Shown piece by piece: positions 6,988-8,778 of a stretch of 64,000 nt of DNA. The stretch's first letter is position 1, and every line of letters begins with the position of its first letter. The DNA is taken from the NCBI GenBank assembly GCA_964035545.1, contig OZ037768.1, positions 13,711,675-13,775,674 of the forward strand, read 5' to 3'. The notes beneath the pieces were generated by a model. That model did not search any database. It saw only the letters and a list, made by a program, of their open reading frames with translations, and had not been told where the DNA came from. Position numbers and translations under genes: made by a program. The DNA comes from Bugula neritina (Eukaryota > Animalia > Bryozoa).

Positions 6988-8778
6988 ATGTATCAGCAAC
7001 AATATGGACAACCTCCTATGCAACCCCAAGGAGACCCAAATTATTTATGGCAAATATTTCAAAGGTGAGTCTATTTAATATATACGTCATTTATCATTTG
7101 TTTTCTGATTCCTCTTTGTTTTCCAGGTTTTAGAAATGGCATTATTTGTTTTAACAATTTCAGTTTGTTTAATTGGCTGCTATATTTTCTAGTTTATGTG
7201 ATAAGTTCAGACTGGATATTAAAGTTGTACTTGTCATATGCTGCTATATTTGAACAGGGTAGACAGTGACCGGAGTGGGCAAATTAGCTGGAAAGAACTT
7301 CAAACAGCTTTAAAAAATGGTAAGAATAAAATCTTCAATAGATTTTTAATATAATGTTCATTTTTTTCTTAGGGTTGATACAAACAGAAGTGGAGATATA
7401 AGTGCTATTGAACTACAAAGTGCATTGAAAAATGGTAAGAATTGGTAAATTCTGATGGAATTTATATGATGAATGATATTTGTTTTTTAAATTGAAAAAA
7501 GCTTTCTTGAAAGAAATTCTTTATCTAGAAGCAAGATCATGAAGCAGATATAATATTTTTCATTTCTTACCACAAGTTTTTGTTCTTTTAAAGGTTAAAA
7601 AACTACCCTAGGGTTATAATAATACTAAAATTAATGTTTTATTTGTTATTTAAAAATGAAATAAATGGATTAGCTTATTTCATCTATTTGCTGCTATATA
7701 TTGACAGTGGCTGTTAATTTTTAAATGTAACCCTTACTCGAAGAAGTATTTAATCTTGATGAGTTTAATGTATTTGGTGATGTTTGCATTATAAAGTTTG
7801 TTTATTGTGCTTTCACAGGTACGTGGCAGCCATTCAACCCAGAAACAGTACGTCTCATGATTGGCATGTTTGATCGAGATAACTCTGGTACTATTAACTT
7901 CCAGGAGTTTCAGTCACTTTGGAAATATGTAACTGACTGGCAAAACACTTTCCGCAGTTATGACCGTGATAATTCAGGCAGCATTGATAAACATGAACTC
8001 AAGACGGCTCTTACTAGTTTTGGTAAATATTTAACAAACATGAAATATCTCAATAAAGTTATGGGTGCCTGCATGTTTATTTTTATGAGTACTACCAATC
8101 TCATATTTTATTGTTGTAATTCAGAAAAAAGGGTTTGCACCTAAAATGCCTGTGTTTGTTATACCATGTACTATCGTTTTATAATCTCAAGATGCTAGTG
8201 AATATCTAAATCAACATAATACTTCTGTATTCTCAATAATATCAGTGATCAGATATGCATTAAAATATATTTCAATTGGCATATTTGTGTTCCAGTCAAC
8301 ATTTTTGTTACTTGTTTTGTTTACTGACAAACTTTGATGATTATGAACTAAGAGCTTTGGGTACCAGGATGATTGCGTGCCCTATGATTTCAATGTCTTG
8401 CCCTATGATTTCAATGTCTTGCCCTATTTAATGTTTTTGTTTGAATGTTATTGACATTTTCTCACAATAGGCTACAGACTCTCTGATAGATTCTACGATA
8501 TTCTAGTAAGGAAGTTTGACAGACAAGGCAGAGGAACGGTTGCTTTTGATGACTTCATTCAATGCTGTGTAGTGATTCAGGTGAGTATCCAATTTATACA
8601 GTACTGCTAATTAACTTTGTAATAAAAACAGTAAATAATACATTACAATAAGCCACGTTTATTGTATCTGTTTCAGACACTAACAAGATCTTTTCAAGCG
8701 TATGATACAAACAAGAATGGCTGGATTCAGATTGGATATGAACAATTTCTTACTCTTGTCTTTGCTCTCAAGAGTTAA
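6988..8778 (+). CDS. PDCD6: Programmed cell death protein 6 (ALG-2), penta-EF-hand Ca2+ adaptor
   Basis: Exons 6988-7064, [7258-7319 or 7373-7434], 7819-8022, 8471-8580, 8677-8778, all GT-AG and in frame. Translation [113 protein letters not shown] closely matches ALG-2. Confidence 0.96.
7258..7319 (+). CDS. PDCD6: PDCD6 alternative exon 2a (EF-hand 1: [20 protein letters not shown])
   Basis: 62 nt, AACAG acceptor, G|GTAAGA donor, phases 2/1 fit the flanking exons. Confidence 0.85.
7373..7434 (+). CDS. PDCD6: PDCD6 alternative exon 2b (EF-hand 1: [20 protein letters not shown])
   Basis: 62 nt, TTTTTTTCTTAG acceptor, G|GTAAGA donor, same phases as exon 2a. Confidence 0.88.
8378..8426. repeat. 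Short tandem repeat, 21-bp unit GCCCTATGATTTCAATGTCTT, about 2.3 copies
   Basis: Direct repeat visible in PDCD6 intron 3. Confidence 0.8.

Follow-up and report, generated by a model that had tools for sequence, protein, structure and literature searches.

Two alternative exons for the first EF-hand of PDCD6/ALG-2 in the bryozoan Bugula neritina and their relatives in other animal phyla

ALG-2, the product of PDCD6, couples membrane repair and ER export to calcium. In Bugula neritina the gene carries two adjacent exons for one and the same segment, the first EF-hand (EF1), which raises three questions: whether both are used and how one is chosen over the other, how old and how widespread the pair is, and what the exchange would change in the protein. 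An initial reading made from the sequence alone (the sequence-only reading hereafter) had proposed a splicing switch between two ALG-2 forms with different Ca2+ affinity or partner preference. We followed up this proposal with RNA contigs, comparisons with other animals and structural data on human ALG-2.

Two EF1 exons used one at a time

The gene lies in a 64-kb window (the whole stretch of DNA analysed) and its coding part is arranged as follows:

6988-7064, + strand: PDCD6/ALG-2 coding exon 1, covered by RNA contigs in 4 of 4 runs
7258-7319, + strand: alternative exon 2a (EF1 loop and exiting helix), junction 7064>7258 in 4 of 4 runs
7320-7372, + strand: spacer intron of 53 nt between exons 2a and 2b
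7373-7434, + strand: alternative exon 2b (EF1 loop and exiting helix), junction 7064>7373 in 4 of 4 runs
7819-8022, + strand: constitutive exon 3 (EF2 and EF3), with PDB matches to ALG-2 chains and RNA contigs
8471-8580, + strand: constitutive exon 4 (EF4), single copy here, from a profile scan and RNA contigs
8677-8778, + strand: last coding exon (EF5) with the stop codon, from a profile scan and RNA contigs

The nearest solved relatives of the product are ALG-2 structures, not sorcin, grancalcin or calpain. Exon 3 matches ALG-2 in the PDB with an E-value of about 1e-34 (sorcin, 1e-19), and a Foldseek search with a model of the NCBI protein 'PDCD6 [Bugula neritina]' (P0177) returned ALG-2 at all of ranks 1-18, with 67-69% identity. 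This protein has the exon 2a form and differs from the 2a form of the window gene at 2 of 184 residues; its model (pLDDT 78) consists of a disordered stretch (residues 1-13) followed by eight helices. The exon 2b type is also found in a second bryozoan, known from a metagenome contig (L004), and in isoform X2 of Watersipora. The 216-Mb genome encodes one PDCD6 and two more distant penta-EF-hand paralogues, and the stretch with the exon pair is single-copy in it. A profile scan of the window found no duplicated EF4 or EF5 exons of PDCD6.

Exon 1 encodes the initial ATG, a Gln/Pro-rich leader, helix 1 and the first two bases of the Arg codon that corresponds to human R34 (human residue numbers are those of the papers cited below). 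Exon 2a continues with D38, Q42, W45 and K46, exon 2b with N38, D42, A45 and I46. The remaining introns measure 193, 384, 448 and 96 nt, and the 3' UTR extends to at least 9113. A loose end in RNA run X1 resembles a stretch at ~5210-5233 that ends at a GTAAGT donor near 5233 and may be a non-coding first exon of PDCD6. Before the start codon, the intron contains an element of ~340 nt bounded by inverted repeats (6290-6632), which looks like a miniature transposon. Exon 3 (7819-8022) has no intron after the RLMIG motif, and neither has L004; the intron is present in Capitella (L005) and was thus lost in these bryozoans.

Several neighbouring genes could be named. An IST1 gene lies on the - strand at about 17440-21110 (Pfam Ist1 match at 20248-20571), ~9 kb downstream of PDCD6, and its linker has several Gly-Tyr-Pro repeats (18689-19012) that resemble ALG-2 type 1 motifs. 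Mammalian IST1 is an ALG-2-associated ESCRT-III protein; the linkage of the two genes may be due to chance. The upstream neighbour is a RING/B-box (TRIM-like) gene (704-1330, - strand), and an OTU deubiquitinase (11388-11669, + strand) lies downstream.

Both EF1 exons are 62 nt long, are flanked by AG and GT, share their phases and have donors identical over 8 nt. They encode the same residue at 14 of 20 positions, 9 of these 14 codons differ synonymously, and 40 of the 62 nucleotides are identical, so that the coordinates and counts of the sequence-only reading all hold on recount. They are adjacent, homologous, equal in length and phase, and have intact splice sites, i.e., they have the hallmarks of tandem mutually exclusive exons. 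Either exon alone gives a protein of 184 residues. The frameshift anticipated for inclusion of both exons or of neither was borne out by computation: translation would end after 55 residues with both exons and after 43 with neither, which places the stop 347 or 259 nt upstream of the last junction. Stops that far before the last junction mark a transcript for decay.

The RNA data are assembled contigs from four runs of four studies, taken as RNA by guess or library label; they are bulk samples without tissue labels, from a strain slightly different from that of the genome. Each run contains two 112-nt arms, 7064>7258 and 7064>7373, and in both arms the last 20 nt, a loose end, match the beginning of exon 3. 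The depths of the 2a and 2b arms are 335/330, 205/215, 164/175 and 1352/834, i.e., ratios of ~1:1 in three studies and 1.6:1 in one, although contig depth is a poor measure of expression; summed, they come close to the depth of the exon-1 contig. The contigs of the four runs contain neither the junction that joins both exons (7319>7373) nor the one that skips them (7064>7819), an absence that covers major forms only because contigs drop rare ones. Both isoforms are major forms in bulk, at comparable levels. The proposal of mutually exclusive splicing is thus upheld in bulk contigs: two of the four junctions singled out for checking, 7064-7258 and 7064-7373, occur in 4 of 4 runs, each copy is joined singly to exon 1 and onward to exon 3, and both are used in four studies, which is not the pattern of a locus where only one exon is ever spliced in.

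The two exons also evolve as coding sequence. In copy-wise comparisons with L004, which has the same two exons in tandem, pN is 0.09 for each copy, with pS of 0.75 and 0.60 (exon 3 in the same comparison: pN 0.04, pS 0.70). This combination of low pN and high pS agrees with the purifying selection on both copies that had been deduced from the synonymous differences. Between the copies, pN is 0.20-0.25, above the value of each copy against its L004 counterpart; the duplication is therefore older than the split between Bugula and L004, as the sequence-only reading had supposed, and the pair in this close relative is intact, with a second exon neither absent nor frameshifted. Candidate remnants of a decayed third copy in the flanking introns were discarded (alignments not significant, p 0.07-0.96), and intron conservation between Bugula and L004 was not above chance. 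One might still regard exon 2b as a pseudoexon, an allelic variant or an assembly artefact, given that the NCBI Bugula protein found carries exon 2a only. Yet both copies are spliced in four studies, tandem copies are present in five independent assemblies and both are under purifying selection. The RNA contigs and the selection data already refute this explanation, to which we attach practically no weight.

How one exon may exclude the other

Two processes may keep the exons apart. In all lineages the 62-nt frameshift would back exclusivity, since transcripts with both exons or neither would decay; in bryozoans, steric exclusion by a spacer below the spliceable length probably contributes as well. 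A short intervening intron often enforces exclusivity, e.g., in CaV2.1 and OGDH, and steric block operates in tropomyosin, actinin and OGDH (PMC9177970). The sequence-only reading had stressed the short spacer. Its length of 53 nt stands, and that of L004 is 70 nt, but it cannot be the general cause because spacers are long in molluscs and an annelid: 869 nt in Patella, 1070 nt in Ridgeia and 2892 nt in Mizuhopecten. Candidate branch adenosines, identified by a YTNAY match only, lie in the Bugula spacer 30 and 41 nt from the 2a donor, and 41 nt from it in L004, an arrangement similar to that of the sterically blocked genes.

A 10-nt intronic motif recurs around the cassette:

7176-7185, + strand: GCTGCTATAT, copy 1, candidate splicing-regulator site
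7240-7249, + strand: GCTGCTATAT, copy 2, just upstream of the exon 2a acceptor
7690-7699, + strand: GCTGCTATAT, copy 3, downstream of exon 2b

The motif has a YGCY core, and its three copies in the 64-kb window all flank the cassette, an outcome seen in 0.8% of shuffles. Two of the copies directly precede acceptor-like AGs not seen in use, and L004 has a similar 8-mer upstream of exon 2a. We treat the motif as a possible lead for a splicing regulator, and nothing more. A putative docking site at 7555-7572, complementary to both donors, was rejected: two RNA runs have another base at 7566, in its core, and it lacks a clear conserved match in L004.

Spread across animals and origin of the pair

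The exon pair is not specific to Bugula: it is shared across several phyla, which the sequence-only reading did not see. Besides L004, tandem copies are found in genomic DNA of the limpet Patella caerulea (L006), the vent tubeworm Ridgeia piscesae (L007) and the scallop Mizuhopecten yessoensis (L010). RefSeq lists pairs of isoforms differing at the EF1 exon in Watersipora, the chiton Liolophura, Haliotis, Gigantopelta, Littorina, Biomphalaria, Argopecten, Pecten, three oysters, the freshwater mussel Sinanodonta, Tubulanus and Lingula, and three EF1 versions among the isoforms of Lineus. The loci of Capitella, Priapulus and the sea cucumber Holothuria have one EF1 copy, and no second EF1 exon is annotated in venerid and myid clams.

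We compared 19 pairs, assigning one exon of each to an a slot (as exon 2a) and the other to a b slot; for 12 of the 19 this was done by sequence and not by genomic order, and the species are not independent. Genomic order is known for seven pairs, two of them from gene models reading through both exons; in these seven, the upstream copy has Q, R or H at position 42 and the downstream copy D, S or A. For this position the true order ranks first of 16 lineage relabellings (about p 0.06). The tree of the 20-residue exon is mostly unresolved; a clade of one origin is not rejected (p-AU 0.10-0.12). It groups the bryozoan a-copy with the bryozoan b-copy (support 99/94 in one analysis and 80/77 in another), and the bryozoan copies share Lys53 and a non-basic position 37. 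These comparisons make a single early lophotrochozoan duplication of the EF1 exon the favoured and probable origin. It would date back to early Lophotrochozoa and have been followed by later loss (Capitella) and, in bryozoans, by conversion or homogenisation, or by re-duplication. Repeated independent duplication across phyla is the less favoured alternative.

Other exons of the gene vary as well. Among database isoforms the EF4 exon varies in three Branchiostoma species, Mercenaria, Ruditapes and Mya, with up to three versions (P0229/P0283, P0195/P0297/P0298, P0334/P0205/P0332 and P0190/P0335). The last exon, which encodes EF5 and thus the dimerisation segment, varies in the brittle star Amphiura, the hydrozoan Hydractinia, the nemertean Lineus and Lingula (P0274/P0189, P0225/P0295, P0278/P0276 and P0214/P0264); Lineus combines three EF1 with two EF5 versions. 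Gene models of bdelloid rotifers and Mya (P0001, P0168-P0170, P0160 and P0250) have 228-250 residues and extra EF-hand matches. In the long Mya models two EF4 exons are read through together. Since the extra EF-hand of Mya is made of two joined EF4 exons, the rotifer models may hide another duplicated exon.

What the exchange may change in ALG-2

The Bugula copies differ at D/N38, Q/D42, W/A45, K/I46 and T/S50, and their net charge differs by one unit. Both have the canonical EF1 ligands (D-x-D/N-x-S-G-x-I-S-x-x-E), and the EF3 loop is canonical too, judged from the sequence only. Ligands D36, S40 and E47 never differ in the 19 pairs, and position 38 varies between D and N in bryozoans only. 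The sequence-only reading was right that both loops are canonical; its stress on loop positions 7, 10 and 11 needs amending, for the sole side-chain ligand change between the Bugula copies is D/N38, at loop position 3. Its suggestion of a partner switch fares worse where known pockets are concerned. The Sec31A pocket (Pocket 3; residues listed in PMC4346919) takes V35, L48, A51, L52, residue 53 and G55 from this exon, none of which differs between the Bugula copies; EF2-EF5 form the ALIX pockets (PMC4346919; PMC5037681). A switch through these pockets is unlikely because the Pocket 3 residues are identical and the ALIX pockets lie outside the exon. With the ligands kept and the Sec31A-pocket residues identical, tuning of EF1 is likelier than an on/off switch or a change of known partner.

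The membrane offers another target. Human ALG-2 docks on acidic membranes mainly via EF1 (R34, K37 and R39, plus N54 and W57); when this patch is lost, recruitment to ER exit sites drops and recruitment to lysosomes does not (bioRxiv 10.1101/2023.10.17.562764). Position 37 is basic (K/R) in 22 of 24 outgroup proteins. It is also basic in 16 of 19 a-copies, but T or N in 11 of 19 b-copies; a K/T37 difference occurs in many molluscs and in the tubeworm. Neither Bugula copy has a basic residue at position 37, hence an argument from K37 cannot be made for this species, and Lingula and Crassostrea virginica reverse the charge trend between copies.

Our preferred reading, at a probability of somewhat under 60% as a whole, is that the EF1 exons are exclusive, with the two isoforms keeping the same ALIX- and Sec31-type partners and having tuned EF1 responses to Ca2+ and membranes. 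Both isoforms would bind the same partners of these two types. The difference would lie in the Ca2+ response of EF1 and in docking on acidic membranes, since this exon encodes the EF1 loop together with most of the patch that faces the membrane (K37, R39 and N54 in human), and it is there that the copies differ in charge and hydrophobicity. We put a graded tuning of the calcium response, the membrane response or both at about even odds. Dimerisation of ALG-2 runs through EF5, and heterodimers of the two isoforms are plausible given co-expression in one cell. A wider scheme adds a lophotrochozoan-old switch between strong and weak membrane-binding ALG-2, with ER-exit-site and ESCRT repair roles split by tissue, and repeated duplication of EF1, EF4 and EF5 exons making a modular sensor; this seems doubtful.

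The duplicates may instead be functionally equivalent, both kept since a broken copy would waste or poison half of the dimers, their differences being drift. Their use at near 1:1 in three studies is in line with this, and so are the missing copy of Capitella and the lack of an annotated second one in venerid and myid clams. The positions that differ most often (42, 45, 46 and 50) also vary among single-exon orthologues, so that drift can explain much. It would explain less easily that Q42 is present in 15 of 19 a-copies but absent from all b-copies, that W45 is found in bryozoan and chiton a-copies and in 0 of 24 outgroup proteins, that I35 occurs in 13 of 19 b-copies against an invariant V35 in outgroups, and that both copies were retained in five phyla, hardly to be expected from pure redundancy. 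We regard equivalence as unlikely but deserving attention. The stripe formed by positions 42, 45/46 and 49/50 on the EF1 loop and second helix, which we take to be exposed, could also bind a different protein in each isoform, i.e., switch partners via an uncharacterised surface. Stripe positions differ in 17-19 of the 19 pairs (position 49 in only 4), the exposed Trp of the bryozoan and chiton a-copies looks like a contact residue, and some ALG-2 partners have unmapped binding modes (PMC5037681). However, the mapped pockets 1-3 are unchanged, and within a slot positions 45, 46 and 50 lack the conservation across phyla that a fixed interface would demand, which makes such a surface rather improbable.

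The splicing mechanism is of a well-known kind. To our knowledge, the mammalian two-residue deletion is the only ALG-2 splice variant described. This human form, which lacks Gly121-Phe122, concerns the same protein and fold and likewise has its function modulated by splicing, but it arises through use of another donor, located between EF3 and EF4, and no longer binds ALIX (PMC5037681), whereas the bryozoan gene exchanges an entire duplicated exon, the one for EF1. The human catalogue of tandem duplicated exon events (PMC9741552) does not include PDCD6. Alpha-actinins ACTN1 and ACTN4 likewise exchange part of an EF-hand through tandem duplicated, mutually exclusive exons; there just one region keeps Ca2+ binding (PMC9741552), while both PDCD6 loops keep their ligand set, so that any effect would be graded, and none of the 19 pairs has a copy without Ca2+ ligands. 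The EF-hand pair of CaV2.1 and exons 4a/4b of OGDH are also mutually exclusive exons in a Ca2+-sensing segment (PMC9177970); these are other proteins, often with a short intervening intron, which among PDCD6 genes only the bryozoans have (53 and 70 nt). The RefSeq entries 'programmed cell death protein 6-like isoform X1/X2' of molluscs, nemerteans, Lingula and Watersipora represent the same event, recorded by automatic annotation. We found no description of an ALG-2 EF1 exon switch in a literature search that reached few subscription journals; the impression of the sequence-only reading that it had not been described is thus sustained as far as papers go, though databases already list the isoforms.

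Alternative versions of three EF-hand exons in one small gene, in different lineages, suggest a recurring benefit. The EF1 pairs are natural, selection-tested loops in an otherwise identical protein, and thus a ready experiment on non-ligand residues that bears on how these set calcium sensitivity and membrane docking.
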